From NCBI GenBank assembly GCA_047495785.1, contig JBLDXI010000033.1, positions 2,728,001 to 2,792,000 on the forward strand: DNA of 64,000 nt, in the 5' to 3' direction. Of this stretch, positions 3,750 to 59,849 are shown in pieces. The position numbers were made by a program, and so were the translations under genes. The notes under the pieces are model-generated. The model was not told the origin of the DNA and did not search any database. It saw nothing but the letters and a program-made list of their open reading frames with translations. The stretch is from Lepidodermella squamata. Taxonomy: Eukaryota; Animalia; Gastrotricha. Position 1 is the stretch's first letter. Each line of letters opens with the position of its first letter.

Positions 3750-4897
3750 ATGGAACTGAAAGACTTGAGTCCTATTCGTGGAATATCCCCGTGCGACCCG
3801 TGCGACGATGTCGAAGACAGTTCATCGACTGACAATTACGCGCATAGCTACACAAATGCGAATAACCAAAAATGGACGCGTCACTTGTTATATTCCTGTG
3901 GAGCTGCTGTCATTGGCAGCTCGTTTTTATGTGGCTATAGCTCGTCGGTTGTAAATGCACCCTTCGAACAAATGTCCGAATTCGTAAATCGATCATTCTG
4001 GGAGCAAGACAATAAACTGCTGTCTGAGCAGGAGCTTGACGTCCAATGGTCCCTTGTTGTGTCCCTGTTCGTCGTCGGTGGCGTTATAGGATCCTGCTGG
4101 TTTCCCGGCTACATGGCGGACAAGTATGGCAGGTAATGCGCCTTTTTGGCCCTATTATAAGATTTCGCTAAATCGAAGATTCTTTTTAAAAGAAAATTTT
4201 CCTTGTTGCTGAGCTCTGCATTTCCGATAGTGGGAGGAATTCTCAGCTTTATTGCGCCTTACACCGATAGTTACCTGCCGCTCATGATCGGCAGAGTTAT
4301 TGTAGGACTTCATTCAGGATTCATCATGGTAGTTGCACCTGCGTTGCTTGTAGAACTGGCTCCAATTCGACTCCGAGGCGCATGTGGAAGTTTCCATGAG
4401 CTCGCCTCTGTTACAGGAGAGGCGGCGGCAAACCTGATTGCCCTACCCTACATGCTGGGAACAGAAAGTTTGTGGAACATCTTGTTTCGTAAGTAGTTTT
4501 GCAGCTCCGCATCTAGTTCACTAAGAAATTATTATACCTAGTTATGATCGCAGTTATAAGCTTTGGCCATGCTGTGATGTTGTTTTTTGCATCGGAGAGC
4601 CCAAGGTGGCTCGTCGATGTCGGCCGAGATGCAGACGCCCTGAAAGGTTTGCCGAATGAAAGTAATAACATGATTCGTTTATCTTAACTGAGGATAGAAC
4701 TGAGGAAATTACGCCAGTGCCACGATGAAGTGATATATGACGAATTTCACGACATGAAGCGTCAATCAGTTGCTGAAGCTCAAGCTGCTAAAGAAATATC
4801 CTGGTCGCAATCGATAAGAGAGCGTCAAATATGGTGGCCACTTTTTCTTAGCATTAATTTGCACTTTTGTCATCAGCTGACTGGAATTGGGGCTATT
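3750..4897 (+). pseudogene. GLUT transporter copy 2, 5' half (TM1 to start of TM7), interrupted after HQLTGIGAI
   Basis: Collinear with copy 1 with introns at equivalent positions (GYSSSVVNAP, DKYGR, ELAPIRLRGACG, ESPRWL, HQLTGIGAI); homology stops at 4897. Confidence 0.88.
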
Positions 4898-4902
4898 GTT
4901 AC

Positions 4903-5366
4903 AGGCGCAAGATCCAGGCTCGCATCAGCGATTACGAAGAGACCATTGAGAACTTGCTGGCTAAGATTTCCGCGCTCGAAAAGTCGAAGCACAAGCCCCA
5001 GGGTAAGATTGAGGACATGACCGTTGAAGTTGAGCGCGCTCAGGCTTTCGCTTCTCAGGCTGAGAGGAAACAACGCCAGATCGACAAGATCATTGGCAAT
5101 TACAAGAACAAGCAGCTCGCCGACGAGATCAAGGACTTGGTCGACCAGCTGTCCGACGGTGGCAAGTCGATCCACGAGACCGAGAAGGCCTGCGCCGCCT
5201 CGAGCTCGAGAAGCAAGAACTGCAGGCGACTCTGCACGACACTGAGGCTCAGCTCGAGACCGAGGTCGCTAATATCCAGCGTTCGCAGATCGAGATCGCG
5301 CAGTTCCGCGCCGACATCGAGAAGCGCATCGCCGACAAGGACGAGGAGATAGATCAGCTGCGCTAA
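4903..5366 (+). pseudogene. Myosin heavy chain/paramyosin rod fragment (intronless, internally deleted, frameshifted)
   Basis: RRKIQARISDYEETIENLLAKISALEKSK...KQRQIDKIIG, then NKQLADEIKDLVDQLSDGGKSIHETEK and, after a frameshift near 5190, RRLELEKQELQATL...IEKRIADKDEEID: typical myosin tail heptads; GC-rich codons. Confidence 0.85.
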
Positions 5367-5424
5367 TTGTTTTTTCACTCGCCCCTTTTCACACTTCGAG
5401 CTCTCAACAATGGGATTTATGCTC

Positions 5425-5448
5425 AATAAATAAATAAATAAATAAATA
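5425..5448 (+). repeat. (TAAA)n tract, resembling a retroelement 3' tail
   Basis: aataaataaataaataaataaata directly after the myosin fragment and ~60 bp of unrelated sequence. Confidence 0.6.
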
Positions 5449-6344
5449 TGGACTTGCTGTCAACGCAACAGCTCGAATCTCATCGAAGCTACTACTAGGT
5501 TCTATTACATCTACCACTACAACGACTTGGTCCGCATCGACTACATCAGCAATGCTTACGTCGACAATTGCGACAACAACTACTAGCAGTTCGCCAAGCC
5601 ATCTCTCAGCGCGCTTGAAATCGCTGCGAATAAAAACATGCGGGAACAGCCAGCTACCCCTAATTCGTATCTCTCGTAGTCGAATTGATCATTTCAATAA
5701 AATTCCCTGATAATTCGATAATGAGATATTAATAAACAGTATTTGGAAACAGGTTTCGCTTGTTATGATTTGTCTTGAGGTGCTAATAACATATCCTGGT
5801 TAATTTTTTTGCCTGAAATATAATTGAAATAGCAATATCGCCAAGCCAGAATTTTCAATGTCAGTTGACAGAACAATGATGGTGAAGAAACTGTCAAACT
5901 GTTAATGAACTCCCAAGTCCTCGGAGTACTCGAGTACCTACTACTCCTCAACAAGTCCCGATTTGATAAATGCAACAGGTCTCTTTGAGAAACAATATTT
6001 CAGGTAACCATTATTCAGCAGCTTTCCAACTTGGCGAGTAATCGGGATCGAGGCCTCCATTATTACGTAGCAGGTGGGAACTCAACTGTAAAATCAAATT
6101 AACTCCAAAAAGTCGAGGTTCAATATACAAAAAGGTACGTTTTAATATAAATTAATCATAGAAAAAATCATAGCACCGGGCAATAAATATCTGATCAAAT
6201 AATTATCAATTCACTGCTTTCTTATAACAAGAAAACGAAGATTAGTAACGGCTCATACAATCCACAGACTCAATGAGAATAACAATAACAAGTCACGTGA
6301 CATCACAAGTCGACGGCGATTATGTGCGATCGAGGCAGATAGGA

Positions 6345-7087
6345 TCAAATGATTGACATGCTTGAGGGTGGCGTCTTATCAGAAGAGGCTTGAATGTAAA
6401 GTCTGCAAATAAAATAACTGTTAATAACAGCACAGAAAATATGTTACAAGTAACTCACCGAAGAAATCGTCGCGCATCTTCCCTTTCTTTATCTAATTGT
6501 CGACGAAGCAGTTGGATTTCACTAAATGAAAAAAATTAATGAAGTAGTTATATGAAAAAGGTGCATCAAGTGCATAACTAACCGTTCAAGAGCATCGATT
6601 TTTTTGTCTCTTCTTTAAACAACAGACAGGAGAACAAATGTACTTATGCTAATTAGTATCGAAGACATACCCAGCCAAATCGCGTTTTAGATGTCGATTA
6701 AAACTAATGAATAAGGTTACGTTTAGTGATAAAAATGATTAAGGTTAAAAATAACCTACCTGACCAGCTCGTCCAGTTCTCTGCGTAGCCTAGGTGCAAA
6801 GAAAAATTAATCTTCTAGCCGCTTCTATTGTTAAAGCTCACATTATGTTACTTGTTTTTAGGCCTGCAGCCTCTTGTGTTTGGCGATTCAGTTCAGTCAT
6901 TAGACTAGTAAAAAATATATAGATTATATAATTTGATTAACAACTATCTTCTAGTTACACTTACAACTCAGCATCATCAGATATCTTGCCTATGACGTTG
7001 GTGATGTCCCTATGTGAATTGTAACACCATAAATATATTTTGCTAATAATGAGTAATAGGGCATTACGTCAAATTGTTTTCAGCCAT
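6345..7087 (-). CDS. Micro-exon coiled-coil protein, 113 aa, 8 coding exons (7087-7068, 7009-6965, 6904-6842, 6789-6760, 6703-6671, 6612-6583, 6521-6459, 6402-6345)
   Basis: Manual splicing at GT-AG sites gives an uninterrupted ORF MAENNLTDITNVIGKISDDAEFLMTELNRQTQEAAGLKTSNIMLRRELDELVSFNRHLKRDLAGRDKKIDALEREIQLLRRQLDKEREDARRFLRLYIQASSDKTPPSSMSII*; all 7 introns are phase 2. Confidence 0.8.
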
Positions 7088-7201
7088 TGCGACTGGACGA
7101 ACAATCAATAAGCAAACAGCTGTAAAGTATATTAAAAATAACAACATTAACAAAGTATAATAAGAACGCGGGTTGCAAAGACTACAACTCAGATGTTAAA
7201 A

Positions 7202-7270
7202 ATTAGGTTGAAGAGTAGGTTCAGGATTAGATTTAGGGTTAAGGGTTAAGGGCTCTAGTAGATTTTAGGG
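7202..7270 (+). repeat. Degenerate TTAGGG-like tract
   Basis: ttaggttg...gtaggttcaggattagatttagggttaagggttaaggg...ttttaggg. Confidence 0.45.
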
Positions 7271-8047
7271 AATCTATTTAAAGGAACCTGATAAATCTAT
7301 TTTTATGCAATTTTGTAATTGTAATTCTACTTTGACAGCTACAGTAAAATCCGGAAGAAACCAGAGGTCAGGATCTATAATAGAAGTAATGAGGAAAGAT
7401 TTTGATCCTCACAATTAAGGCCAATTCAAATAAAGGAAATCTTTCGGCTAATATAGACCAATTATTAGACCGTATTTCAAACTCAAACTCAAAATTTGCT
7501 TATTTCACCGATCTTTTGCACCAATTAAACTATAATGTTAACAATCCATAATTGAAATAGGTGCAAATGACGGAACGAGCGACAGCATACAACGTTTCTA
7601 TAACAACAAGACAGGGTACCTACTTCTGATCAGCAGTCAAGTCCGGAACCCCGAATTCAAAATTGGCGCCTTAAATTGTATGAAAATGTGTTACTCTAAA
7701 TGTATTACATTATTTAAAAAAAATTAAATATTCATTTATTTAATGTCAATAATTTCCTTTTTCTGAAAAAATTTGCCACGTGGCAAGTGACAAACGTGGA
7801 CGTGGAAGTAGACTTGCTGTGCATTGGTATGGTTGCTGCATGGTATGGTATGGGGTATGGTTGCTGCGCATTGACAGTCTAAAGTTTAAGAGCGAGCGGT
7901 GTAGATACAACGCAGGTATGCATCATCATATTATTATAAATTTTCCGTAATTTTCCGTTTTTTATTTCTCCAGCTCAACTTACCTTGATTCAGATTAATG
8001 CGACTCCTCGACCAACTTCTTAACTGCATCATCTAGTTATCTGCTTA

Positions 8048-9188
8048 ATGACATCTAGTTCACCTGAAAACAGCTTAGAGACGGAAAATCTGAGCTCAAG
8101 GTAGGAGTGAAGCAATATCTAATATTGTTTTTTGACTGATATAATTTTAGGCGGTGAAATTTGTTGTGGTCCGTGCCTTGTTTAACTTTTTCAACAATGT
8201 ATAAGGAATAGCGAAAAGAAGCCGAAAAAGGAGAAGCTTCGTCTCAGGTCGCTACCGTTCAACCACTGCCTCAGAAATCGTCATTCGATGGCAGACCATT
8301 TAGCCACCATGACGACAGTTTAATCAGCTTCCCGGAACCTCAACCTGGCGAGGAAGATTTGATTCTCGCAGCTGATTCTCGGTGCGAATGTGGCTGATGT
8401 TTTCGACCCACTGGCGTTTTCTGACAATTCGGTCTCCGATCTGTTGGTTGACGCCCCACCCTCTATCCCTTTGTGTAACGAACCTGCAGGTCCTCAATCT
8501 GGGCACCAAAACGCAGCCGCACGAGTGCCATCTTTTGACTATCGAACATCCAGCCTCGACCCATCGTCAGCAATCGACTCGGCGATTCGGCGGTTCTACG
8601 CAACTACTGACCGCAAACATGACAGGCGTGATTTCATCCGACTCTTACGGCATTTGTCGCTGTTGTGTAAAAAGTCGGACGTTGTCGGACGGGTGTACTG
8701 CTCGGCGTCTCGTTGGATTAACATGGCTCAACTTGGTCCTAACGAAGCGCTACCTTTGGACGGAGACCCGCTTGAAATCTACTCGAAATACCTCGCTGAA
8801 ACGCCGCTGTTCATCAGCCCGTCCGCGTCATCGCCCCACGCTGTCGAAATGGAGAACATCATTCGAAATGTCGTACAATCTACCCGGTATCTCATGCTGA
8901 TGAACACCGTAATTCGATGTCCAATTGACCTCATTCATCCCTAAGCCCAGTCGATTTCGAGAAAATCGTGGGGTCGCGTCATCTCATGATGGCGGACGAC
9001 ATGTCATTACGGTTTTACGCATCTGGAACATGGCACCGGCGTATTACCCGATCTGCCAAAATGCAATGGTGGCATCGCCCTTTGTCGTTCTGTTCCTCAA
9101 TCTACGAGAAGGAGTAGGTGTCGAGGAGAACCATGCGCCAGATCAAAATGCTAAAAGTCATGGTTCTGAAGGTAATTTTGATATTTAA
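8048..9188 (+). pseudogene. Orphan, probably disrupted gene (main ORF 8390-8944, continuing in another frame to ~9170)
   Basis: Splice-like sites (donors 7916, 8101, 9172; acceptors ~7973, 8150) and coding-like composition, but stops and frame changes; no recognisable motif. Confidence 0.35.
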
Positions 9189-9319
9189 TTTATTCCGGTT
9201 ATGAATTCTTTGGTGTTTTGAGGAAAAATTTACACTTAAAAAATTTGCTTAGCAGTAGTTGTAATTCAGATCAGCTCCGTTCTATAAAGATGTTGATACA
9301 TCGAGTCATTCTCCAAAAT

Positions 9320-11675
9320 CTTCGCGATAAACGCTAGAATAGTGGATATATGTGATATGAACTTGGTGATGCAGTTAGTCAGTGAGCTGGAATTACCGGA
9401 TCTGGCGATTCAATTGGCGATAAGATTGGAAAAAGAGCCAGTGGTTCCGCAAAGCCGATAACATCATCTCGAACAAAAACGAAGGTGAGGGTTTCTACAC
9501 AGATCACTGGTTTATCGACCTGTTGCATTCACTCTGATGATCACGAGTCGATCGGATCCATGTATGCTGTTAGTCCGGGCGACGATGGTAACGGAAGAGT
9601 AACGGAAGAAAAAGCCGAGTTTACGCCGACTGACATTAGCAGAAATCACGAAATCATGCGTTCATTTTTCATAAAGAGCAAAGCCAGATGTTTGCGTGCA
9701 GCTTTATTCCTTGGATAATTCCAATTTGCAACAATTTCACGCCGATATCTGCGACGGCAAATTTGAGGTCGTTAGCTTTTCGAAAAGTAACAACAAGGAA
9801 AAGAAGCCAGTCAAAGCTATGATGCTGTGATATTCGCATATTTTCGAAAGTATGCGAAGTGACGAAACAAAGCTTCCAGTTTCAACGTGTAGTGTAGTGG
9901 GAAATGCAGCGGAACACTTAATGCCAGTTTGCCGCTTTTCCGGTGAATCGCCGTCGCGTTTGCTTGTCTTGTTATCGGCCTATTGCCTATTGCCTATCGT
10001 TGGAAAGTTGAACAGTAACACTGACGATTTGTTATGCGAGTCGTTGAAGTCTATGTAGATTATCAGATGAGCAATGAGTCAATGAGATGAGAACAGTAAG
10101 CCTAACAATGCTAAAACATACAGCATGCGGGGGCTAACTGTACTTTGCTGCTGACTAAGGCGTGGCAGGGTGAGCACGGTTCCTCTCGGTTTAACATCGT
10201 CGTCAACCAGGATATATTGAATTCTTAACATAGTATTCCCGACGATTTTCCAAAGCTAAAGCCGATCGAAATGTTGCAGAAGCGTTAGGTAGATGGCCGT
10301 ATTGTCCGTTCCGTTAGTTTAGCTAAATAGAAATATGGGAATTACCGCTTACGAATTACGCCGACAGATTTTGCCAAATTGAACGATTTTGTTGATAAAC
10401 TTCAGGCCAGTGGTGAAGCTTTTTGTCAAAAGTGACTTGTCGTATCACGCAACGTAGATGTTCATTAATGCTGCGATGCCTTCGTGTTAGAGTGAGCTAG
10501 AATTAGAATTGTTTACGGCTGTCGGAATTTTTGACTCAACTTCATTTCCATGGTTACTACATCTTTGCCGTCTTCGACTCGACATCGACAGTTCTGTCAC
10601 ATTTGAATTCTATGTTGTCACAATTGAAAACAGGCAGTTAGAATTGGTAGAGGTTGAGAAGTTTACAGATGACGAAGTAAAAGATAGGCCCGCTGTCGTG
10701 CTGGCACAACATCAAGATGACGTCATGACCATGGGTTCGGTCCTGATATTTTTCCAATCAAAAGAAGAAGCTCAGGCGTGGCAGTGTGAGCACTGTACGG
10801 TTCCTACGGTGAATCACCTTCGAGGCTATTGGTATTGTTATTTGCATATTGCTATGCATTCGGCAGCAATGATTATGACCTCGCTGAAAAAGTAGGTTAC
10901 TGCGGCATTTATGGCCTTTTATTAACAGATGGTTCAGATGGTGTATACACCGGAGAATCACACGGATGGGTCGACGTTGTTCCAGTCGATGTGGGTTTCA
11001 TCAGCGTTAAATAGATGGCCGTATTGTTCGTTCTGTTACTATAGCGATAATCAAACATCATCTGAAGACCATCAGCCAGTGCGTTCAAATGAGCAAACTA
11101 AGGAATCTAAGTTGGGGCTGAGCCAAGAATTTACCAGCTGGAATAATTTTACTGGAAAAAGGGCCAGTGGTTTCGCAAAGTCGACAACGTCACCTCGTAC
11201 AACGAAGCTTTGTCCATATATCCTAATTCTGATAATCACGAGTAGCTTGAAAAAGTGCCACCTCGCATGCGACTATTTAGTAAGTCATATGAAGCTGGGA
11301 TTATCGATTCGTCAAAATTTGCTAATTAGTAATAATTTCCGGGTGATTGAGCAACTGCAGAGCTCGCTGCGCCTTTTATGTAGCGACCCTGTCTTCGAGG
11401 CTATTGGTATGGTGGAGTTGCCATATTTGCAAGCAAATCGCGCGTAAATTTTTCATAAAGAAGAAAGCCAAGTGAATGCAGTCACTTCAAGTGAATGAAT
11501 GACTCATTATGACCTCGTTGGAAAAGTCGTCCGTTATACAGATTATCGAGTTGCCATATTTCGAGTCAAACTATTATCGAAAGTATGCGAAGAGACGTAA
11601 CAAAGCTCGATGCCTTCTGGTTTCAACGTGTAAAAGAGTGTTGCTTCAGCAACAAACAAGAAATCACGAAATGCC
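9320..11675 (+). repeat. Scrambled mosaic array of ~25 short diverged fragments homologous to the 13798-18991 gene
   Basis: E.g. 9412-9526~17199-17309; 9683-9818~17842-17977; 9907-9987~18270-18350; 10643-10803~16949-17108; 10807-10893~18304-18390; 11084-11143~14734-14793; 11251-11322~17987-18058; 11332-11393~14949-15008. All on the same strand and non-collinear. Confidence 0.92.
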
Positions 11676-12586
11676 AGCTAATTAGAGTGAAAGTAACCAT
11701 TATTAAGTCGGAAATGAGTGTGAAGTTTGTGTGGTCGTGTGTATCCATATAAAATTTTTTGTCGATTTCATGTATGTTTTGCAAAATTAATAGTTTTATT
11801 AATTTTTTTCGTAGGTTGTCATAACTCGCTCTTAACGATTTCGAAAGCCAGGGCTACGCAGACCGAACGTCGCTTGAAGCGCTGAAGTAACCTTCTCAAT
11901 GTTTTGAGCAACGTCAGCAACAGCTTTGATGCGAATGATAACATCGAGTCCAATGCGGCTACTGCCATTTTCATCGAATCTGTGACACCATATATCATCA
12001 ACGTGAGGTTGCAATGTTGATGTCAATCGTTTGCAAGTGCTGAAATATTGTCAGGTTAATTTTTACTTTTTGATGCATTTATGATCTCGTCTGAAGCTGA
12101 GATGTCGCTGATCAAATCCAATTACGTTAGCAAAGCCTGTTGATTGGAAAAATTGTTATGATGCCTATTCATGTCGTCAATTTTTTACAAATATTTGTTA
12201 TCTGCTGAACTAACTGAACTTTTGTTGGGTATACTAATGCTGAAACAGACCGAATTGACGTGACATTTTGCTACCAATTTTTACTTCGAGCAAACTTACG
12301 TTCTGAGCTCAAACTTTGAGATTGTGTTCGTAAATAAATGGATTAATAAATTTCAACGTTATTCCCTGGCTATTGATTGATGTTGAAATATTGAATAAAC
12401 GTTGCACAGTAAAAAGAGTGAAGTGCTTTTGTACTTGATGTATAATAAAGAATAAAAACTATTGTTGCAAACTTTGACGATTTATTTTTGAAATATTTGG
12501 AGCTGGCCTATCAAGGCATTTTCATTGGAGCTGAAATTTTGTTGGAAATACGGCATCGGAAAACGGCATATGATAGACCGACACTA

Positions 12587-13030
12587 CAGGGTGTTTCATA
12601 AAAAACCGAACTCCTATAAAAATGTACTGCTGCTGCGCGTTATCGATTTTTTTCGCAAACAGCACGGTCACCGCAAATTTTACGCATCAGCAAATAAACT
12701 GCCATTTTTATTTAACTGATGGCCCCTTTCAAACGCAGCGCGACGAAGTCAGAAACCTCACCGTTCACAGGCACGTTCTAGGGAAACCCGAGCGCGCAGT
12801 GTCAAAGCGCCGTTATCCAACCGCACACAGGCCGGCTAAAATTGACAGAAATTGACCGCAGGTTAACCGTGAATTCACCGTAGAAATGCCGTATTCCTGC
12901 CGCTTTTTCTCCTCGCGACAGCAACAAATAACATGGCGCATGGAAAATCGATAACGGCAGTACTTTTCCTATAATATTTATGCATGCTGATATAAGCCTT
13001 ATCTCGTACCGTTTTTTATGAAACACCCTG
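12587..13030. mobile_element. Tc1/mariner-type MITE (444 bp), TA target duplication
   Basis: TA|CAGGGTGTTTCATAAAAAA ... TTTTTTATGAAACACCCTG|TA terminal inverted repeats; no transposase. Confidence 0.88.
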
Positions 13031-13451
13031 TACGCGAACAATGTTTACTGTAATATCCGACACGGTACGGATTCCACACGGGTTTGATATACGTGAAGAG
13101 TCAATAACAGTCAGGCGGAAATGATAAAAATAACTCCTCATTTTATTGCTATAACATTTCGGTATTTTTAATGCGACACGCAGGCCGCTTATAAGTTGGT
13201 ATGCGCACATTCCCCAGGTGAAAGCGAGATAACGAGCAGAGAAAGCGCATGAAAAACATTTGACAAGTATTAAGATCACTGATGAATGAATTTCGAGATT
13301 TACCCACCCGTCGTGAAATTGCTGTCACGGGTTGGCTCATGAGCAATCTGGCGGTTAGCATCAGGCAACGGCGAAGCTGCTGCGCTGCGCAGTCGACGCC
13401 AGCGCCGATTCGTCGTTCAGCGCATTGCGGCGCAGTAGTATTGGCAGCGCG

Positions 13452-13703
13452 TTAAGCCGACGAACTAGCAGACTGCTGCGCTTGAACTGAGGGCACGGGC
13501 GAGCGGGAAACGAGCTCGAACGTCGTTGAAAGCTTACCGTGCAAGCCGTATTTCTCGCTGTGTATCTTCTCGAATAGCTCCGCGATGTGATGCGTCGACC
13601 CGGCTAAATGCGAATGAATCAAATTTAAATCAGAAAAAATAAAAGTGCACTTACTCATTTCTAGAAGGCTCATTCTGTTTTAAAGATTCCTGTCGATGGC
13701 AGC
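13452..13703 (-). other. Possible short spliced transcript divergent from the nuclease-like gene
   Basis: Minus-strand GTAAG donors (13654, 13537) and acceptors (13703, 13604, ~13487) spaced as ~50-nt introns; reading frame ambiguous. Confidence 0.3.
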
Positions 13704-13797
13704 TGAAATAATACAATCGTGATGTTATAACTTGCATTTCCTCTTATTATTAGTTGCTTATATATCCCTAAATATCGCAATATTTTCGTGTCGAAGA

Positions 13798-14872
13798 ATG
13801 GCGGATCCTGCTCATGTGATACCAGAGCTTAAAGTTTTCACGAAGAAAGTGTTCATCGTATGCTGGAGGGAAAATTCGCGTAAGGTCGGAGGCCACAATG
13901 TTTGCAATGTGACACTATCAGTACACTCGGATTCATCGAAGCGTTGCGCAGGGCAACTGTGGTCAACTAAAAAATCTCAATTGGATAAGGTTCAGTTCCT
14001 AGGCGTGATCAAGACAGAAGAGTTTCAAACTCCTCAGTGCATGCAAACAATCACGGATTTCTTACCCAAAACTGACCTTTACGTTGGTGGGAAGCTGTTC
14101 GGGATAAAGATCGAACTGGATTCAGCCCATGTTCACAATTTCACCATCAAGGACGATGTACGGCTCGAGAAGCTATTCCCATATCGGCATAGCATGCAGT
14201 TCGCAAATGTTTGTGATCTCTACAAAGCTCCGAAGCCTGTGAGAAACATCAATGTTGCTGCCTTGATTTTGAATGTTGGCGAATGTAAACCAGCGGTGAT
14301 ACCGGACAGGAAGCATGCAGAGATGTTATGCGAATTCGAATTTGTCGATTTAATTTGCGGCCAGACCTTCTGTAAATCAAACGAGACCGTGTTTTTATGG
14401 ATTGCTTTATAAATTTTCTATAATTATAGGGGGTAAAGCTTGGGGCAAGGAATGGCAACTGTTTTTGAGCGAATACAAAGGAAAACCTGTTATTCTGGAT
14501 AGCGCAAATTTTGCTGTCTACACTAATGGCTACGGCTGCAGTGTCGCAACAGACAAATTAACAACGTTCGATGTTGGGCCAACAGCCCAGCAGTTCCTTC
14601 CCGCTATCCCTGTTATTGCACCTTCCGTTGAAGACGGCATTTCGCCGAAGCGGGCCAGATACGCCAGTGGGCCATGCGCTCGAACTGCGTCTGAGAGCAG
14701 AGTTATCGACCAACAAGACCAACAGCAAACTAATTCAAATCAGCAAACTAAAGAATCCAAGTCTGGGCCGAGCCAGGAATTTGCCAGCTGGAAAGACGTT
14801 TTACAGGCGGCTGCCATGTTTCAATGGCCAGTCGATGAAACTGTTGAAGCAATTTTTGCAGATGATTCCTAA
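13798..14872 (+). CDS. OB-fold ssDNA-binding protein (RPA70/MEIOB-like); either a separate gene or the N-terminus of the downstream nuclease gene (1-nt frameshift near 14867)
   Basis: Exons 13798-14371 + 14430 onward give INVAALILNVGECKPAVIPDRKHAEMLCEFEFVDLICGQTFWGKAWGKEW...KGKPVILDSANF...TDKLTTFDVGP, resembling the MEIOB/RPA70 OB pattern (INV.A.V..VGE.K....DR....CE..L.D.....W). Confidence 0.6.
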
Positions 14873-14939
14873 ACATTCTAAAACTCGTTAATGTTTTTTT
14901 TTATTGTTGCTGTTGCAATAAATTTTAAATTATTTATAG

Positions 14940-17900
14940 ATGAATCCTAATTACCCTTTAATTGAGCAACTGCAGAGCTCGCTGCGCCTTTTATGTGGCG
15001 ACCCTGTCCCTTGGGACGAGCTGGAAAAAGCCTATCGGAGTTTAAGCGTACCACCGGAACGGGGAGCCCATGGGTTTGTTGCCGTTGATTATATTTTTTA
15101 CCGAATAAAAAAATTACCGTGTTATAGCAAGGTTGAGGCAGTACTATCACGCGTTGGTGTGACGTTGGACGTATTGGAAATCGGTGCATCACTCCGAAAT
15201 GGCATTAAATTCCTGTTTGCCACGCTCGGCAACCTGTTTGCTGTAGCTTTCGTTGGAACCGACGGGCAGTTGGTTCAAGTCCACTGCTTTGTGAACGCAG
15301 AAGCCGCGCCCATGCTGCCGAACTTGACGCTTAGCGAGATGTTGGCCATTTGGCACAGAGCCCGGTTTTATGTCTATCAGGTTCTACAATAATATTCATG
15401 ACAATAAGCAATATTCTAAAAGCTAACCTTTCCAGATGACAATCGATGACATCCTGGTGAGTAAAACTGCCGCCGAACTGACAGTCGCTCATTTAGCCGT
15501 GGCGTCAGATTTGGAACAAACGTTCAAACTGCTCTATCGTTTCGGCGAAAGGCTCAGGTTTCACGCGATTCCTGCACTACAACGGCGTCCTGAAATGACC
15601 GAAGTGGCTGCAAGGATTCTTTGGCATCTCGGTTATCGTGAAAATGCACTTCGAACGGCCTTGGCCAATCCGAACACGCCTAAACTAGTCACGTTTGTAA
15701 GTTGAACACTTTTCCAAGTTCCGAACGAATTCCAAGTTTGATGTAACATTTTCAGCTCAAGCATCCATCAGCTCGTCCTCATTTGTTGGCATTGTGTCGT
15801 GATGACGAAACGTGCCGCCTTAAAGCCTTCCAGCTTGACCTCATCCAAGTTGAAGATGTCGCTGATCCAACACCTCAGATCGCGAATTCGGCCAACGCAG
15901 ACGACCCGCCACGCTTGGAGTCACCTGAAGTGGCTACGTCAAACGCGTCAAACGTGCCTCTTACGATCCCGCCCAGTTCGATCATTCGATCAGACGAACC
16001 GCCACGCTTGGAGTCACCTGGAGTGGCCACGTCAAACGCGTCAAACGTGCCTCTTACGATCCCGCCCAGTTCGATCATTCGTCAGGTATATTTATAATAA
16101 ATTTATCTATATTCAAAATTACAAAAACAATCTTTATCAACAGACCGCAACGCCTCGGCCCTTAACTGGTTCGATTTCACGTGAAAACGTTACCTTCACT
16201 CAAGTGGTTATGAAAACCAAACCAACTTCGAACGCTGTAAGTGAGGAGGCCGCGCTGCCTCGTGAGCCAGAGAATGTGCCATCTACTTCAAATGGAATAG
16301 ACCAGCCGGCGAATCGAAAGGTTTGCAACAACAACAACACAACTTTTTGCATTGTTAACAATATTGAATTCTTAACAGAGTATTCTCGACGATTTCCCTA
16401 TGCTGAAGCCCATCGAAATGCTGAAGGCGACGAAAACACTGCTCAGCTCAATCAACAAAGAACATGTCGAGAAAGTTGACTTCGCCAAAATGTATTTGAA
16501 CGCACGTGAAGATTTTGGCACAGCGGTTGACAATTCAATTCATGCTTCAAAGCTCCGGAAATGTTCATTCCCCAGTAAGGCCATGATCGACAAGCCGATC
16601 AACATGATTTTGGCTTATCATGAGGAGCTGGGATCAATGTATGCCGTTGGACCAGGGACGGATGGAAACTGCGCTAGGCTGCTGAATGGTCCCAGCAACA
16701 TTCCAGCTAGACAGTTCGAAAATTCGCTGAATTTGGCTGAATTTTTAACGTCACTTCACTTCGATGGTTACTACATCATTGCCGTCTTTGACTCAACATC
16801 TCCATCGACCTTTACAATCGAAAATCGTCGAAGTGTGGAAACCTTTGGTCAGCTGAAAAACTGTCCTAATGGTTACTACAAAGATATTCGCAGAATTGCC
16901 GAAAAGCATCGTTCTCGGATAGTGAGTTTCGAATTCAGTTACGATGACTTGGAGGAGGTGGAGAAACTTGTTGATGGCCAACTAAAAGATAGGCCCGTCG
17001 TCGTTCTGGCGCAACATCAAGATGACGTGATGACCACGGGTCTGGTCCTAATTTTTTTTCAAAATGGCGAGGGAGCCCAGGCGTGGCAGTGTAGGCACTC
17101 TACAGTTCGTCTCGGATCAAAATCGTCGCCAACTAGATTGTTTTCGCCAGCAGAAGCAGGCAAGGTCAAGCCTAAGTGGTCTATAATTAAGCGCCTCGAT
17201 TGGCGTTACGATTGGAACAAGGGCCGGTGGTTTCGCAAAGCCGACAACATCACTTCGTACAACGAAGCTGACGGTTTTTACACCGATCATTGGTTCGTTG
17301 ACTTGTTACCCTCGTTCCGTGATGGCCGCTTAACATCAACTGATGCTGCCAAGTACAACGATTTCGTTGACAAATCGTTGATACTCCAGTACATTTCGAA
17401 GAATACCAAATCCGAATACATCCGCGATTGGATTTTCACCTGTACTCGCCGCAGGCCAATGCTGAAACTTTTCGGTAAAAGCGACATATCGTTCCATGCC
17501 ACCTTAACGTTCGTTGACGCTAATGAGAAGTCGAAGGCCCTTACTGCCGTGACTGAATCCGGCGACTCAATCCGGGCCGCGTTCGGGAAAAACGCTAAAA
17601 TTCTCGACATGAAAGACATGAATTCGGCTATGCAGTTAGCCAGCGAAAAGTCGCCAGATCCTGGCTTACTACTGCTTGACCTGCCTAGACACATCACTCG
17701 CGAGGAGCTCATCAGCTACCTACCAAACGGCTTCGATGTACACTTGGTGGAATTGCCTTGTTTCCAAGCAAATCACGCGTACATTTTTCACAAGGAACAA
17801 ATCCAAGTGAATGCGGTCATGGAAAAGCTGTCAAATGAGTGGCCAGATGTTCGCATTCAGCTTTATTCGTTAGACAATTCGAAATTGCGGCAATTTCAAG

Positions 17901-18991
17901 CTGACATCCGCGATGGCAATTTTGAGGCTGTTAGCTTTTCGAGAGGTAGCAATAAAGAAAAGAAAACAGTCAACGCCAAAGCGCCAAAATTGCCACCTCG
18001 AGTACGACTTTTCAGTAAGTCATATGAAGCTGGTATTATCGATTCGTCAAAATTTGCCTCTTCATTGCACGATCCTCTTACTGCGTACGCAGTTGTCGAA
18101 AGTTTGCGTGGTGCCGAAACAGAGCTCGCTGCCTTCTGGTTTCAACGGGTGGTAGAGTGCTACTTCAGTGGCATGTGGGATGCATGCACCTATTCGTTCC
18201 TGAGGCATCAATACGGCGATGCTTTCGTGGAAGGTGTTACAGCCGCGAGGTTCAAGCTATTGAGATATACAGCGGAACACTTGATGCCATGTTGCCGAAT
18301 TTCCGGTGAATCACCTTCGAGGCTCTTGGTATTGCTATCCTCATATTGCCATGCATTCTGCAGCACTGATTATGTCCTCGCTGAAAAAGTCGACCGTTAC
18401 ACTGACGACCTCTTTTCAGGTCGCATGACGCCTGAAGTGAGATATGGTAAGAAATGGTCTCCGCTCTTCCAAGGCGTCGAGTCCAGATTCGTCTTAAGCG
18501 GTCTTCATCCCTGCCAATGTTGCAGAAATTACTGCTGTGAAACTAACCACTGCTCCACTCTGGTTTTTCTATCGGAGGTTACCAAAGGACAGCCAGTAGG
18601 CTACAGCGGCACCTATGGTCTGTTAATAACAGATGGTTCAGGTGGTGTTTATACAGGAAAATCCGCTGTGACCTTGAGGCGTGCCAGCAGCCACAAATCG
18701 CATTCGCTCCAGACAATGTCGAATCCAATAGCGGCAAGTAGATGGCCTTATTGCGCGTTCCGCTACTACAGCGATAACGCATGGGCAAGAATGCCTTTCC
18801 GCCTCTTGTTCGAAAAGGCGATGTGTATGAACGTCGCCGGTGATCGAGAGCGATTTCTACGAGAAACTTTTTTCAATGCTACCAACAAGCCTCACCCAGA
18901 CTACCTCGCGATCCACAATATCGATCCGAACGCGGTTGTTAACGAGGACGACGAGTTTCAAGACGACGGTGATGAAGAGGAGTACATGTAG
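14940..18991 (+). CDS. Large orphan protein (1273 aa from 14940) with three RRM-like modules, a Cys cluster and a C-terminal GIY-YIG-like endonuclease; exons 14940-15380, 15436-15696, 15756-16085, 16144-16320, 16379-18991
   Basis: Phase-0 GT-AG introns keep the frame open. GIY-YIG-like SGTYGLLITDGSGGVYTGKSAVTLRRASSH...LFEKAM...FFN (~18605-18880); RRM-like LLLLDLPRHITREELISYLP...HAYIFH, SLILQYISKNTKSEYIRDWI...HATLTFVDANEKSKAL, GLVLIFFQNGEGAQAW; CQCCRNYCCETNHC; acidic tail. Confidence 0.75.
15898..16081 (+). repeat. Two near-identical 93-bp (31 aa) tandem coding repeats
   Basis: cagacga.ccgccacgcttggagtcacctg...cccagttcgatcattcg starts at both 15898 and 15991. Confidence 0.92.
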
Positions 18992-20215
18992 CCATCGGTT
19001 CAACATACGACGTCTTGTGTGTGACGTTTATCGCCCAGTTTGTTTCACTAAGACTGTAAAGTAATACATTTGATTCATTTGATGAGTGCTATATTCAATA
19101 GCTAAGACTGTAAAAGTTGCAATGAAATAAAGATAATTGGTTTATAACCTACTGCTGATGTTGTACTGCAGTGACGTGAACGAAGCATCGGTAAACATTT
19201 TCGATCGACCAAGTTCGAGCGTTTTAAACTGACAAAAATACACAAAATAGGAATATTGCGATATATCATGCGAACAAATTCGAACCTGAAATCACCAGCA
19301 GCAGCAGCAGCAATTATTAATGGTTGCCAGTAGTATAATGAAACGTGTCGCGATGGTTTGTTCAAATTCGAAGGCAATGATATACATCAATAGGGCCGCA
19401 TTAATTAAGAACATTAACAGGCCATCATCATCGTCATCATGCCAGTAACTACTTTCAATAACAGCCTATAGAAATAGGTTCATTTCATGAGACGTACAAT
19501 AGGACAATATGGACTCATTCTGCGAGCCGCGGCTGACTATCGTACGTCTAAGGATGGTTGGTTCTGCCATTTCTAGCAGACGTAAAAAAGTTCATCAGTT
19601 GAGTTGAGTTTAACTGACGTGAATTGGCTTTTATTAGCTATCACAGCCTTCACTTCCACCGGTCGATTTCATTCAGCTTCAGCTTGATTTGCATAATTGC
19701 CTCGTTTGCGTCATTTCTTGCGCTAGTTTTCCCCCGGGGCGGCCTAAAACCTGACGAAAAATCGATCGAAATTGGCGCAAAAATCAATGACAAGAAATCG
19801 GGGTTACACTGTATCAGTGCTCCGATTTTTTTTCGTGACTCGAAAGTGTCTGCCACTGGAAAGAAATTGCAAAAAAGTGTACGCCAATTTGGAAATTTCT
19901 TAAAAAGCTTGATTTTTCGGCGATTCGCCTCTGAAAATGCGAAAAATGAGCATCTCGAAGCTGGTTTTGTCTCCAAATAGGAAGGAATTGTGGGTCTCCT
20001 TCTAACTTCCTTCCGGACAGATTACGGATTCCAGATCATTGAACATTGAAAATGGGGCCTAATGAGGATGGGTTTAGGAGAATAGGAATAAAAGGAAAAT
20101 GGATAATCGCGAGCGAAGAGAGCAACATTTTCTGAGCGTGGTCCAGTGGGCAAAAATCGGAACACTGCACTGTATTAAAGTACAGGGTGTTCAAGAAATA
20201 ATGGCTAGATATATA

Positions 20216-20636
20216 TATATGTCGTATCGTATAAGGCAATCCCTCCAATGGCCGATAGAGATATCTCAATGAGCAATCGGAAATTTACTTTCTGACTGAT
20301 GTTTTCATCAGCCTTCAGGTTATTGAATTATGATCTATCACATATTAAAGAGCCCGAATAGCCCTATCGATCAGACTTTTAATTGATTAATAAAGAGTTT
20401 AAATTGATCCAGAAGGCCAGAAGACAGTTACAGTGAAAATGCGCTAGCTTTTTAGAAACACATAAAACTCATAGATGGGGAACAAGTTATTAGGGATTCT
20501 GTAATCTTGCTTGGTTTCCAAATAAAATAAAATGATTAAAATAACTGAAAATGACATTGGGAACAATTCGGATTGCTCATAGATGGATATCTCAATCGGC
20601 TAATGGAAGAAAATGCCTTATACGATACGACATATA
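20216..20636. mobile_element. MITE with ~70-bp imperfect terminal inverted repeats
   Basis: tatatgtcgtatcgtataaggca...atgagcaatc mirrored by gattgctcat...tgccttatacgatacgacatata. Confidence 0.8.
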
Positions 20637-20849
20637 GCATTGAACTTTGAACGAGTGACATCTTTTGTACTGGACACGCATTTTCTTGCTCGTCTTACTG
20701 AACTTACTGAACATCAATTTTTCAGGTTCGAAGGTTCGAAATACTTTATCCCTAAAAATGACTGAATATTGGCGCGAAACTATTGAAGAAAGACGTCCAG
20801 TTCCTTTCTAAATTTGAAAATTCATATTGAAATTAAGCATCGCACGCTT

Positions 20850-21707
20850 TTCTAGCTAGCCAGTAATCCTTATGAGCCCGGCCATTTTACCGGCCTTATA
20901 TACCGGCCGGCTTGTAGTAGTATGATGTATGCCATAACAAGCGAGGCGAAGCCGAGCTATCTATCAGCTTGCTTATTATAAATTAGCTTGCTTTTTGCTT
21001 GCTTCTACTAATACTACTCCTACCAGTTTTGTAATATATATGCTTGCTAATAATGCAACTTGCTTAACCGAGAGATTTGCAATTGCTTGCTATAAATTGA
21101 ATATAAATCGCCTAAATTTAGTATCCCTAGATAATAATCAGCTTGCTTCTTACAAACTTGCTATTGTCTATTGTCTTGCTCTATCTACTTATCTAATATC
21201 AAGTTGCTAATTATCAAATAGCTTGCTATCTGCTTGCTCTTATCACAATACTTATTATCATGTATATCATCTTGCTATCTCTTGCTATCTCTATCTCGCT
21301 AATAACTAACTTGCTATCTAAGTATTGACTTACTATACACTATAGATTACTCATATTTCGCTTGTTATCATCTAGTATATATAAACTAGAATCATCGCTT
21401 GCTATAAATTACACAGATACCGCTAGCCATGTTTGTAACTTGCTATGGTAGCTTGCTTTTAACTTGCACGTTCTTTAGCTCTTCTCGATCGCGCTTGCTA
21501 GCGATATATTCGGTTGTCAGCGACGCTTGCTTCAAAAATCTGCATCGTCTTTTTTTTACATTTTGTTTTAAAATTAAATAATAAAGTGTTTTTAAATTAC
21601 GGAAAATATTTTTCTTATTTTATTGACGAAACTGTTATAGGTGCTCTATGAGAACCCCGGAAACCGGCGGCTTGCTTAGCAGCGGCTTGCTAGACTTCGA
21701 GCTTGCT
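20850..21707 (+). repeat. Dispersed same-strand CTTGCT motif array (~20 copies) at the right end of the insertion
   Basis: gcttgct/cttgcta recurring every ~20-60 bp between 20967 and 21707; also gcgaggcgaagccgagc at 20941. Confidence 0.65.
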
Positions 21708-21754
21708 TATCGCACCAATGCCAGTCAGCTGGTGTATTATGATTATGTATTATT

Positions 21755-22554
21755 ATGTATTATGCTTCTTTAGTAATGGTAGATTCCGGAATGGATTCTG
21801 ATACAGCGGAACTCGCAAACTTCGGCCTCAGCCTCCTTAACATTGCTGCAACTGGCTTGTCATCAGCAATTGTAGATAGGGCAGGAAGGCGCATATTGAT
21901 GCTAGCAGGCGTAATGGGCCTAGGCATTTCACTTGTCGGGCTGATGATAGTGCTCAGTTTCGACGTAAGCACGAAAATGAATCCATCTCTAGCACAAACT
22001 TATTGTTTTCTGATTTTGAAGGCCATCTATGGAGTCATAGCCGTTTTCGCCGTATTCCTTTTCTTTTTCTCAATCGGCCCAGGTAACACAATTATCTCGG
22101 GGAAGTAACGGTTTACATCGTTCCGTTTACATCATTAGGACCTGTACCATACATTATGACAGCTGAGCTGTTCCCACCGAGCGCTCGGCCGATGGCGATG
22201 AGCCTTTGTATCCTAATTAATTGGTTAACCAATCTGGCGGTGAGCATGCTATTTCCTATCGTAAAGGTGTGTTTATCCTTTGATTTTTTCGCGATAATAT
22301 TTAATCAAGAGTTTATCAAGGGCTGCATCGGCATTTATGCTTTCGTGCCATTCATAATTATGTGCGCTATTGAGTTTGCGATCATGTTCCTCTTTTTACC
22401 GGAGACCAACAACGTGCCAACTTCAGAGATCAGCGAAATGTTTGCGCCTGGAAAATCACTGTTTCATTTTCGGGGAAAAGCCGCACAGGCTTTCCAATAT
22501 GCCGAGCATAAGGACCCTAAGACGAAATCTGACGCTGACAACAATTATTTATAA
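21755..22554 (+). pseudogene. GLUT transporter copy 2, 3' half (rest of TM7 to TM12 and C-tail)
   Basis: MYYASLVMVDSGMDSDTAELANFG, DRAGRR, GPGPVPYIMTAELFP, LPETNN; introns at ~21965, 22083 and 22267; frame intact. Confidence 0.88.
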
Positions 22555-22957: not shown

Positions 22958-25900
22958 TTAGGAAATGTTGGCGTTGACGCCATTTTTCTTCAAAGCTTCG
23001 CGGAGTTGCTCCTTCACAGCGTCAGCATTGTCCTTTGGCAGCGGCGGCGCCGTAAGCTGCGTCGAACCTTTCTTCGCACTGCCCGCATCCGAGATGTTAC
23101 TCTTAGGCGCAGCAGTATCGGCACTCAGCCCTGTTCCTTCGTAGATTAGCTTGTACTTGAGCGCACTCTCAGGTTTTCCAGGGTCACTAAAAATGTCAAG
23201 TTCACCTCATGATTATCAATATGGATTTCTAACCTTTCCCAATAGAACAGATACTCCGTTGCACCAAAACGGCCCTCTTTGACAGCAGCTCGCCTGATAA
23301 CGGCTGTATTCGCGTCTTTGTCGACCAAAATAGATCGCATATTGCCGAGCGAGACTGCCTGTAGCACGAACTCGTAGCCATCTTTAGGTAGCTTCTTTGC
23401 AGCTACTTTGCGCGCGCCCGATTCACTTCGGCTGCCCTCGATCGTCATTCGTAAACCGATCGGCCGAGCAACAGTATCATCCTCGGGGCCGTACAACTTG
23501 ACGTAGTAATCGATGACTGATAGCAAACATTTAGAAGTTATTATTTAATTAATTTTGTGAAAAACACTTACATTGAGTGGTGGGATGTTTAAACCGGACA
23601 ATCGGGTGCTCGCAGCAGCCGTCATTTGGTTTGCCGCACAGGTGCGCAAAGTTGAAGTGAAGCTGTTCCCCGCTCTCCCGATCGGTGGCATATACATCTT
23701 TTATACACCATGTAGCAGAAGAGGCATCTTCGACGCGAAGTTTCAAAAGATCCTTCAATTTCGCCTCCTCTAGCGTGAACACCTGTCCCTGGGTCGTTAC
23801 CGTTTCGGCCGGATTCAAAGTCAGCGTCTCCTTGGCTTGAATGCTGGCGCTAGATCCGCTAAACAGAATTATGGTCACAGGCCGCGAGGGGCCAGGTTCA
23901 GCAGTTGTGATGATTCGACAGTCGAAATTGCCACTGAAATGTTCCGGCGGATTGTCAAGCACTCGTGGTTGGTCCCAAACAGGCGTAAAATCAACATAGA
24001 TTTTACGATCGCCGGTTCCGCTGTCCAACCAACGGAACGCAGGGAACACTAGTACCGGCTTAGAGATGTCCCCAGCATCGCGAACTTGACATTCGTTGAT
24101 AAACCAGCCGAGACCACGACCAGTCGATAGATGGCCCAAACCGATAGTTTTGACAGTACCCACTGAAACAATAAAAACATCGCAGATATCGCGTGCTCCG
24201 CGCTGAAACATTTTCGGCCTGTCGCTTTTAAGAAGGAACACTTTTCCGGAATCTCCCCACGTGCCCTGGATATTCGCGTAAACAGCTGAATCTGGATCTG
24301 CGCGTTCTTTGTCACCAGTGAATATGCACACCTCGTAACCAACCTCAGCAATCGGAGCCAGATCAGGTCTTATGACACCGAAATCTGTACTGCCAGCGCC
24401 ACCCGTCGCGGCACTAGCCTCAAGAGCACGTATCGGCGCAGCGAGCAGCTCTTGCTTTGTCTTCGTGTCAGAAAGGTTAACCTGATCTATTTTCCAAGAA
24501 AAAGCTCCTTCACTCTGCACAGCGACTCGAAGTTTAACTATCGGACCAATAGCTCCGAAAGACGTCTGGAAAGGTTGCGGCTTCGCCAGGTTACCGGCTA
24601 GTTTCAGCAAATCAACCGGGTCTGATTGCTTGCCGCTTGCTGAGTAAGCGGTAAGTGTCAGCGCTGTAGCTTTTCCCGATGGCGCATTATTCACCGTTAG
24701 CTGTACTTTGTAGGAGCCTGATGATGGCTGCGGTCCTGGCTGGAAGCGCCTGTCGTATTGAAGCGCAACGCCTGTCATTTCCGTTTCCGGATGCTTGAAT
24801 TTCGTCACTTGCCCACTCTGCACGAATTGCACATCAGAGAATACTGCCTCGAAAACATCGTGCTCTGTCCTGCGAATTCGAATCCGCTTCACTTGCCAGT
24901 TGCCACTGGAATGCGCTGACTCGGCGAAACTGAGGTGCGCTTCTTTGATATCGCCAAGGTCAACAGCAGGCATGAAAAAAATGTCCGTAGTACCCGGCTT
25001 GCCAAACACCTGGCCGCCACCAGTCTGCGAACGCGAACGGAGCAAGTAACGTTCGCCTGTGTCGCCCTCAGAACCAACAATCATGCATTTGACACTGCCG
25101 TTTTTCAAGCCACCGCTCGCTTTAGAAGCGCCTCCTGTTTCGATAATCAATATGTAGGGCAAAGTCACTGGCGTGTTCGGTGGGGCATTCGATTTTGCCG
25201 CAACAGATTTGTTGCTTGCACCAGAGGTGGGCGCAGGAGGCGGCTGAACAACGGCCAATTCGCGACACAGACTGCCATCTTCGGCTTCGGGACCGAGCCA
25301 CCGGTCCAGGTAAAATAAATATTGGAAAGCTGTTGCTCCTGAAGCGTCCGTCAATTTTACCTATATGAAGACATTTATAGATACATGCAAAAGTCTAACT
25401 AATGAAATCCTCACCCAATCGAGATTGAGCGGGTCGGCTTCCCCTTCCGGCGAGTACGTGTCAATAGAAATTTTGCGCAGCTGACCGATGTCTCCAGAGT
25501 TGTATTCGAATTCAGCCACAGCGTTTGCAGCAAAATTCTCTCCAGCTCTGACACCATTAGAGAGCTTGGCTCGTTTCGATTTACCGCGGCTGCCGTACAT
25601 TGTCATGTATACCTCGGTGTTGTAGCCGGGTAGGGTGTCTGGACCTGACTTCGTTTTCACCTTCCATTTTTGCGGAATTTTGGGAGCCTTCGGGTCAAGT
25701 TTGGTCAGCTGATCAGCGGCAGGTATTGTATCGACGAAACGCAGAGTCCGTTCAATCTAGTAAAATCACAAAAAACTAAAGACTTTTCCCATTCGAATAA
25801 TCTCCTTCCTTACATGCCCATCATCTTCCCAAGGGTCCAGCCATCGACCGCAAGGGAATATTAGTGAATTATCAGGATCGGTCGATGCTGTAACTCTGAT

Positions 25901-54669: not shown

Positions 54670-55644
<975 letters not shown>

Positions 55645-56663
55645 TTTCCCGGTACTAAAATTTATAATACTTGTATATTTGGGCCGAAAACGGCACAACC
55701 ACTCAGTGGATGCCGCAAGAAATGGATGGTAATAAATCGATAAATATGCGAATGCGGCGATGTCTCCGGAAAAAACTTGCTCCGCGAAATGCGAAGCATT
55801 AGTCAGACAAAACCATGTTGAAATCGCGCGATTCCGTTTCTGCAAGACCGTCGTACAAATATTATTTCTGCCGGAGTAATGGTCAGAGCAGATGCAGCAT
55901 GCTATGCAGATATCTCTAGAGCCCGCTATGATCAGTGTTAATTCCAACTGTCTCTTTCATGCGATGAATAAATGTGTGCTGTGAAAAAAACTATAAATTC
56001 AGCTCTTGTAACAAATGAAGATGGCATTAAAGACTATCTGATGCTTCAGCGCGGCTCTGTCGTGCACATGCTCTTCATACACTTAATTTTTTTCCTGCTG
56101 AAGTTATATGCGAAACTTGTGTCTGTTAGCTGAGCATCCTGTGCGTGAGGATTATTGATTAATTCGAGCTCAACATAGAACGAGCCGCGTCGGTTTCATC
56201 AGCAATCCTTCATCGTTCAGCTGCCGCCGCACTGATACGTGATACCTCACTTCTGCCGTTTTGAAACGAAGGGCTCTCAAGCGTAGGCAGTAGAACGATA
56301 TAAATTTATGCTTTATTAGCAAATTTCCGACAATAATATATTATGAGTCGTCCACTCTATCGCTGCAAAATAATGTATGTCAACGATTCTGCAGGTATAT
56401 TCTGCTGTTTGTCACGCAAGGCCCACGGAAAATATGCATATAAATATACGTGGAATGTATTGAAGTGCGATTCCGATGGAAGACAGCCGAAAAAAGCACA
56501 CATTTACACGACATTAACAAAGCAGGCGTGAGGTGAATATTATTAGTAGCAGCAGTGACGTAAAAACTTCAAACAGGCAACAATTTTGAGTTTGGCAACA
56601 TTACAGTCTCAGATATTCGAACAAAGAGATTGCAGCCCGAGCAGTCATCGTTAATCAGCAGTT

Positions 56664-57710
<1,047 letters not shown>

Positions 57711-58142
57711 GACTGTGCAGATTAATATCTAAAACTAAAAGTTAAAAACTCAATCAAATTCCGAAAATAGCAAAAATTTTACTCATTCCGCTCACTGCGA
57801 TATAATACAACAAAGTAGACTAGCACATTATGGTAATAGACCCATCATCTCAAGGAAGAATAAACTCGTCTCACGGTAAATATTTGCAAGTATCAAAATT
57901 AATAAATATTGCTAAATGCGAGTTGAGTATTGCTATTGCGAAGAAAGAATATCATTCAAGTGATACAAAGTTGAGGATACCTTCTGTTGATGGAAGATAA
58001 AAATGTACGCGAATCAATCAAGATGAAAAAATGCGTTAGACGTGTAAGTAGGTTTTTCAAGAGTATTCAGTTACAATGAATTTATCCGTTAGCAAAATTA
58101 TTCCTGTTTTCCCTTGTTACTCGCGAGAATTTTCATTTCATA

Positions 58143-59849
<1,707 letters not shown>

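Follow-up and report, generated by a model that had tools for sequence, protein, structure and literature searches.

The window analysed here is a stretch of 64,000 nt from the gastrotrich Lepidodermella squamata (contig JBLDXI010000033.1, positions 2,728,001 to 2,792,000), and all coordinates below are positions within it. At 9321..11649 it carries a mosaic array made of about 25 sense pieces (24-163 nt) and of micro-pieces of 14-18 nt, which belong to an orphan gene family and stand in permuted order. The array is contained in a long intron (9172..11814) of a host gene and lies 2 kb upstream of an intact member of the family (13798..18991), which is read in the same direction and which served as the reference for the pieces. 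Array, host gene and family gene are all on the + strand. An earlier note, made from the sequence alone, had described the locus as a scrambled archive of fragments of the gene family of this neighbour, acquired one after another.

The pieces were delineated by comparing 9170-11812 with 13600-19100 and with the whole window (BLASTN, word size 7). At E<0.01 this recovered 24 of the 26 piece pairs listed in the earlier note, the two weak ones being 9997~18378 (E=0.86) and 11393~18315 (E=0.12). All 24 significant pieces matched plus/plus, in line with the claim of a uniform sense orientation, and the sole minus-strand match was 37 nt long (E=0.016). Twenty shuffled versions of the array gave 0-4 matches at E<1. 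Identity of the pieces to the neighbouring gene was 64-91% by BLASTN, and an independent repeat search returned the same pieces at 63-92%; at the protein level (tblastn) similarity was still 50-88%, spread over all three frames. The edges of the pieces are sharp, with identity falling from about 80-90% to random within a few bases, and at many junctions the next piece begins 0-5 nt further on, so the description of directly abutting pieces held. Likewise, neither the repeat search nor TRF revealed a constant repeat between pieces. Together the pieces account for 1,830 nt of the intron (2,643 nt), which carries about 150 nt of non-family sequence on either side of the array. The left half (9321..10472) is the more distant from the neighbouring gene, with a mean identity of about 78%, compared with 83% for the right half (10507..11672), where several pieces reach 90-91% and where a possible further micro-piece of 13-14 nt lies at about 11655-11672. 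Self-BLAST revealed no second scrambled array within the 64-kb window.

The array is not an artefact of assembly. Public contigs from two data sets, here called X1 and X2, were aligned to 8300-14200 (5,901 letters). One X1 k-mer contig matched 8967-11375 exactly over 2,409 nt, and low-depth contigs from X2, an older data set, lay inside the array at an identity of at least 99%; this agreement ruled out misassembly. Since X1 is probably the sample behind the assembly of the window, X2 alone counts as independent.

The X2 contigs also placed the array in a transcript. A 735-nt X2 contig consists of 18 A, 11813-12471 and 58 nt ending at 9169. Shifting its joint by +2 yields GT..AG boundaries and an exon join at 9171/11815, and thus an intron of 2,643 nt (GTAATT...TTTCGTAG). 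Both features expected of a spliceosomal intron, the GT..AG boundaries and a transcript from which the segment is missing, were thus found, and the whole array therefore lies inside an intron of a + strand polyadenylated transcript. X2 depth was 217-354 in the exons versus 0-13 inside the array, and the array intron is removed efficiently by splicing. That X2 represents RNA data is a guess by the software; the GT..AG joint and the poly(A) tail support it.

The host gene is well expressed and unrelated to the array family. Its upstream exon or exons (8305..9171) are orphan, no Pfam match was found for the gene, and its terminal exon (11815..12471) contains AATAAA signals and ends at a poly(A) addition site at 12471, marked by the loose end of 18 A. 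Because the longest host open reading frame (ORF; 8390-8944) stops upstream of the intron, the array probably sits in the 3' untranslated region; in an alternative host frame, about 24 codons run across the splice. X1 contains, at a depth of 93.5, a sequence with about 96% identity to 8532-8996, either a second copy of the host exon or an allele of it. It has an in-frame deletion of 3 nt at 8687, and indels departing from multiples of three occur only from 8912-8949 (+1, +3 and +5, sum 9), a pattern as if coding constraint stopped near 8908. At this same position an X2 contig leaves the host exon, where the next bases are GTAATT, and continues with 250 nt that are absent from the window; the 8908/8909 joint may mean that the host is alternatively spliced to an exon far away, or that the contig is transcribed from the other gene copy.

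The neighbouring family gene is multi-exon, with predicted introns at 16086-16143 and 16237-16378 and a last ORF of 863 aa at 16400-18991. No Pfam match was obtained for the family ORFs and no match among PDB sequences for the gene, and neither a length-limited word search of 5.8 billion proteins nor an exhaustive HMMER search of 1.84 billion representatives returned a relative. To judge from these searches the family, which is multi-copy, is orphan and lineage-restricted. The label "nuclease-like" given to it by the earlier note is a lead rather than a result. It is favoured by a candidate GIY-YIG-like motif region at 18590..18800 (YGLLITDGSGGVYTGKS...LRRxxxH, preceded by a Cys cluster) and by a language-model atlas in which the last 174 residues fall nearest to GIY-YIG nuclease clusters; but the atlas score of 0.88 is below the guide value of 0.9, Pfam and PDB sequence searches gave no match even at E<=10, and a single-sequence AlphaFold 2 model of the protein (predicted local distance difference test score 40.6) was unusable. 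Two other features of the gene were seen. At 15898-16085 a 93-nt tandem duplication, whose copies are 95-97% identical, doubles a Pro/Ser-rich segment of 31 residues in frame. Between two of its ORFs, at 14842-14940, there are a stop at 14870, an AATAAA at 14918 and a strong acceptor (TTTATAG) right before the ATG at 14940; this segment may be a normal intron whose donor, GTTGAA, is weak, or else a boundary between two cistrons, as in an operon.

The order of the pieces had been described as shuffled. It is indeed permuted and non-collinear with the gene, but it is not fully random. Descents in gene-coordinate order number 9 among 25 pieces, where permutation predicts 12 (P=0.04); short forward adjacencies of at most 300 nt number 8 where 2.3 would be expected (P=0.001), and ascending runs reach a length of up to 6 pieces (P=0.02). 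The most fitting description of the array is of some 17 larger blocks, collinear but with internal deletions, that are themselves permuted; for example, 9651-10027 corresponds to 17770-18408, and 10507-11058 to 16722-18785. Coverage of the gene is uneven and partly redundant: 55% of 16361-18785 is represented in the array, 317 nt of it twice, while 14715-15008 supplies two pieces and the first 900 nt of the gene none. Because of this redundancy and the nine descents, a single collinear old paralogue was ruled out.

The argument that collinearity is to be expected of a decaying duplicate nevertheless goes too far, since duplication with subsequent loss likewise permutes order and leaves orientation intact, and the residual collinearity is significant. 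An alternative that we consider rather unlikely, though deserving of serious thought, is accordingly that one or more direct copies of family genes, tandem or nested and situated upstream of the surviving gene, were repeatedly duplicated in tandem and randomly lost in place, and that the host afterwards came to splice over the remains into a new terminal exon. Orientation would then be kept automatically, redundancy would represent incomplete loss, and an intact family member in the same direction does lie 2 kb downstream. By the mitochondrial gene-order rule (PMC3283314) and the tandem-duplication-random-loss distance, the approximately ten ascending runs would need only about four duplication-loss rounds, and the end of the longest host ORF before the intron fits a 3' exon acquired late. 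The mitochondrial tandem-duplication-random-loss process (PMC3283314) shares with our array the orientation-preserving permutation and the remnants of incomplete loss. In contrast to it, we are dealing with a nuclear pseudogene on a scale of 50-150 nt, and the heterogeneous donors described below do not suit a single ancestral copy. Further points against in-place decay are that isolated micro-pieces of 14-18 nt lie between unrelated pieces and not beside their collinear neighbours, that array pieces are nearer to other paralogues than to the adjacent gene, and that the redundant pairs are not all sisters.

The origin of the pieces was addressed by their differences from the neighbouring gene. 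These are most frequent at third codon positions (0.29, versus 0.16 at first and 0.14 at second positions), and the sources were therefore coding genes under selection. The pieces hold 4 stops in 442 codons, and with these stops and an identity of 64-91% the array itself would now appear to be dead. Only four exact matches of at least 20 nt (36, 23, 21 and 20 nt) connect the array with the neighbouring gene. At informative sites the piece at 10807 sides with the neighbouring gene and not with its array twin (9:2:1), whereas the redundant pairs 9841/11574 (5:2:0) and 10281/11003 (6:2:3) group with each other. Further family contigs were present in X1 at depths of 42.5, 46.9, 54, 64.3, 101.7 and 112, and one such paralogue contig has about 88% identity to pieces whose identity to the neighbour is only 77-78%. 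Ten of the 26 X1 joints, that is all those listed, translate to normal collinear gene order, so the listed contigs are ordinary paralogues; no second scrambled array was seen among these ten of 26. At the level of sequence comparison, these data show at least two donor lineages and an adjacent gene that is not the main donor. The earlier description of the pieces as fragments of the neighbouring gene family thus stood, with more than one family member contributing.

The same comparisons bear on the proposal that the array is a library of silent cassettes, in which pieces would donate to segmental gene conversion diversifying the adjacent family gene. The arrangement of partial copies upstream of an intact gene in the same orientation is as expected for this, and the grouping of 10807-10893 (90% identity, including the 21-nt exact match) with the neighbouring gene is what a conversion tract could produce. 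Known cassette systems (trypanosome VSG pseudogenes, Borrelia vls, chicken pseudo-V) resemble the array in holding partial same-sense copies upstream of an intact member. Their cassettes, however, retain the reading frame and conserved flanks and closely resemble the expressed gene, while the pieces studied here are short, scrambled, interrupted by stops and too diverged. With exact matches of 36 nt at most, they would be poor substrates for homologous recombination; there are no conserved flanking homology blocks, and most pieces are nearer to other paralogues than to the neighbour. The proposal thus fails on frame integrity and on long tracts of high identity, and we regard it as very improbable.

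One piece informs on the nature of the template. The piece at 10214-10279 includes 18 nt, 17 of them identical, of the predicted intron 16237-16378, which has a GTAAGT donor and a TTAACAG acceptor and whose removal keeps the frame. The template would therefore have been DNA or pre-mRNA rather than mature mRNA. This intron sequence speaks against another alternative, which is that a retroelement polymerase moved by repeated copy-choice between family transcripts, in the manner of chimeric retrogenes or defective-interfering genomes, and that a break in the intron took up the resulting cDNA. A single-stranded RNA template would explain the uniform sense orientation, the jumps go both forwards and backwards, and one piece begins within about 3 nt of the predicted exon or ORF start at 14940; at the right edge of the array, however, there is no poly(A) tail, target-site duplication or 3' end of the gene. 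We therefore hold a product of reverse transcriptase to be improbable. Strings of chimeric same-orientation gene fragments that are co-transcribed with a host or element are also made by Helitron and Pack-MULE capture. Unlike in those cases, all fragments of the array come from one family, and no transposon ends or target duplications were seen flanking it.

The junctions between pieces were then read base by base. Some are blunt (9539/9540 and 9682/9683), some contain fillers of 1-3 nt (GAT, A, CTT, CTA and TA), and others show microhomologies of 3-5 nt (AGT, TAGTG), as had been noted for AGT. Longer fillers hold exact copies of other array pieces (18 nt for 10818~11393 and 14 nt for 11415~11548) as well as local slips (TATTGCC twice and CAAGTGAATG twice), and GGAATTACCG is common to two fillers. 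Direct exact repeats of at least 11 nt are enriched in the array (10 versus 0.8 in shuffled sequences); inverted exact repeats (4 versus 1.3) are not. The array thus displays the blunt ends, microhomologies and short templated fillers that characterize template-switch junctions, as read against a diverged relative and not against the true donors. Recurrent breakpoint hotspots were considered but not supported, the shared edges 18093/18093 and 18405/18408 being about what chance would give for 25 pieces by our own estimate. Cryptic splicing or back-splicing as the origin of the pieces was ruled out as well, since splice-like dinucleotides are rare at the corresponding edges in the gene: GT follows 2 of 25 piece ends, and AG precedes 3 of 25 piece starts.

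The single orientation, the two-way jumps, the blunt and microhomology joints, the short fillers and the micro-pieces copied from the array itself fit serial template switching by a polymerase of repair or replication. We therefore favour the reading that the array is a non-functional template-switch mosaic that was later reworked, to which we assign a probability of roughly 0.55. According to this reading, stretches of at least two family members would have been copied in one direction, with many forward and backward template jumps, that is by serial template switching during the repair of a break or of replication. The product would have landed in an unrelated expressed gene, within the present long intron, and would later have been altered by duplications, slips and deletions that were small and local, and by neutral decay. 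Patchworks generated by template-switch repair are established, both for microhomology-mediated break-induced replication (MMBIR; PMC2621351) and for templated insertions by polymerase theta (PMC4490562, PMC4032859). With fork stalling and template switching (FoSTeS), MMBIR and chromoanasynthesis (PMC2621351) the array shares many short templated segments, joints that are blunt or carry microhomology or filler, and two-way jumps on nearby or related templates. It differs from them in comprising 17-25 segments within 2.3 kb, in one orientation and from a paralogous family, and in being old, fixed in the germline and located in a spliced intron. Polymerase-theta end joining (PMC4490562, PMC4032859) likewise produces fillers that copy nearby sequence, slips, microhomologies of 1-5 nt and blunt joints, whereas its known templated inserts measure mostly tens of bases and most pieces here measure 40-160 nt and come from distant paralogues. 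We would class the array as a complex template-switch rearrangement of an extreme kind, pure in orientation and fixed in an intron.

Several points weigh against a template-switch origin or against parts of it. The number of segments in one orientation (17-25) is far above that of typical MMBIR/FoSTeS events, in which orientations are usually mixed, and polymerase-theta inserts usually remain below about 50 nt. Breakpoints and microhomologies were read against a diverged relative instead of the true donors, and the three-way counts at informative sites are small. Finally, we infer the lack of function from decay and context.

An independent scar in the same neighbourhood was counted in favour of template switching. 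An exon of a GLUT-type transporter gene is broken at 4897/21755 (3750-4897 and 21755-22554), between QLTGIGAI and MYYAS, with a gap of 16.9 kb. The broken gene is the second of two tandem copies; the exon is continuous in its twin, and there is no GT/AG at the break. At the right junction an inverted 26-nt copy of the left flank is found at 21709-21734, a likeness to polymerase-theta products, and ATGTATTAT slips occur just before 21755. Judged by these features, the break looks like an insertion scar of error-prone repair and not like an intron. A myosin-tail coding fragment at 4900-5110 (Pfam Myosin_tail_1, E=7e-8, below the gathering score) adjoins the broken GLUT exon and has the same direction.

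The location of the array in a strongly expressed pre-mRNA raises the alternative that it is a source of putative small RNAs, the intron serving as their precursor or template and the small RNAs restraining a selfish, nuclease-bearing family. The family sampled is multi-copy, some of its regions are present two or three times, and the family gene encodes a candidate GIY-YIG-type nuclease, again as a lead. However, since the pieces are sense to the host transcript, direct processing would yield sense RNAs, and the array offers no inverted repeats for hairpins. As targets, the neighbour shares only the four exact matches given above, and the nearest paralogue contigs seen are about 88% identical. 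No Rfam family was found at the gathering threshold over 4000-22500, nor at E<=1 over 8200-12600, which includes the intron; no tRNAs were found, and the nematode piRNA upstream motif was not enriched. The steady-state intron signal is very low, and splicing is efficient. On balance we find a small-RNA source quite unlikely. One-strand piRNA clusters and archives of endogenous viral elements are similar in being transcribed loci with decayed fragments of a multi-copy, possibly selfish element. Fragments in those loci, in contrast, stem from nested insertions, are larger and lie mostly antisense to the cluster transcript, whereas all pieces here are sense to the host, abut one another and sit in a spliced intron.

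A more far-reaching version, and an improbable one, would be a genome-wide intronic store of permuted fragments of selfish or multi-copy genes, from which pre-mRNAs or lariats would give putative small RNAs that police a nuclease-bearing mobile family, as a memory of parasites that needs no repeats. The earlier note had proposed an iterative acquisition of fragments and a memory as a candidate role, but the array has no repeat, no leader and no regular piece size, its pieces are old and decayed, and it is spliced out (depth 0-13 versus 217-354). The likeness to CRISPR arrays that had been suggested is superficial and confined to the notion of short target pieces kept in an ordered archive: direct repeats and a leader are missing, no adaptation genes were recognized, the pieces range from 14 to 163 nt, are 64-91% identical and partly redundant, and the genome is eukaryotic. 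The adjacent gene is an orphan with a weak GIY-YIG lead, and the array belongs to a different transcription unit. Nothing in these data, as we see it, points to an acquisition machine or to a current function of the array.

If the array is only a repair scar, it would document serial template switching with preserved orientation in the germline of an animal, in a natural record that is unusually dense and clean, with at least 17 blocks in 2.3 kb. As such it would help to infer the repair polymerases that shape compact genomes and the way in which long introns originate there. If such mosaics did yield small RNAs, they would represent a new layout for genome defence. The locus also draws attention to a multi-copy family of orphan genes that may encode a nuclease and for which 1.84 billion representative proteins include no homologue.

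The remainder of the window encodes ADAM-type disintegrin/Cys-rich domains, PLAT repeats, GNL2, a bZIP protein and GLUT-type transporters. The exons seen here are long, the predicted introns short (54-142 nt). The GNL2 orthologue is at most 43-45% identical to animal proteins in the databases, and its named best matches are all from invertebrates, nearly all of them protostomes. From the sequence, the genome can be described as that of a divergent, protostome-like animal, and as compact. Between the host gene and the family gene, at 12585-13032, lies an element of about 448 nt that resembles a miniature inverted-repeat transposable element (MITE), with 27-nt terminal inverted repeats (TACAGGGTGTTTCAT...); contig depth there is about 1,000 in X1, where single-copy DNA has about 45. 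A related terminus and a second inverted-repeat pair are present at 20180-20213 and 20216-20636, downstream of the family gene. A long gene with many PLAT/LH2 repeats occupies 23549-31119 on the - strand. At 54670-59007, three diverged tandem paralogous segments share 58-60% identity.

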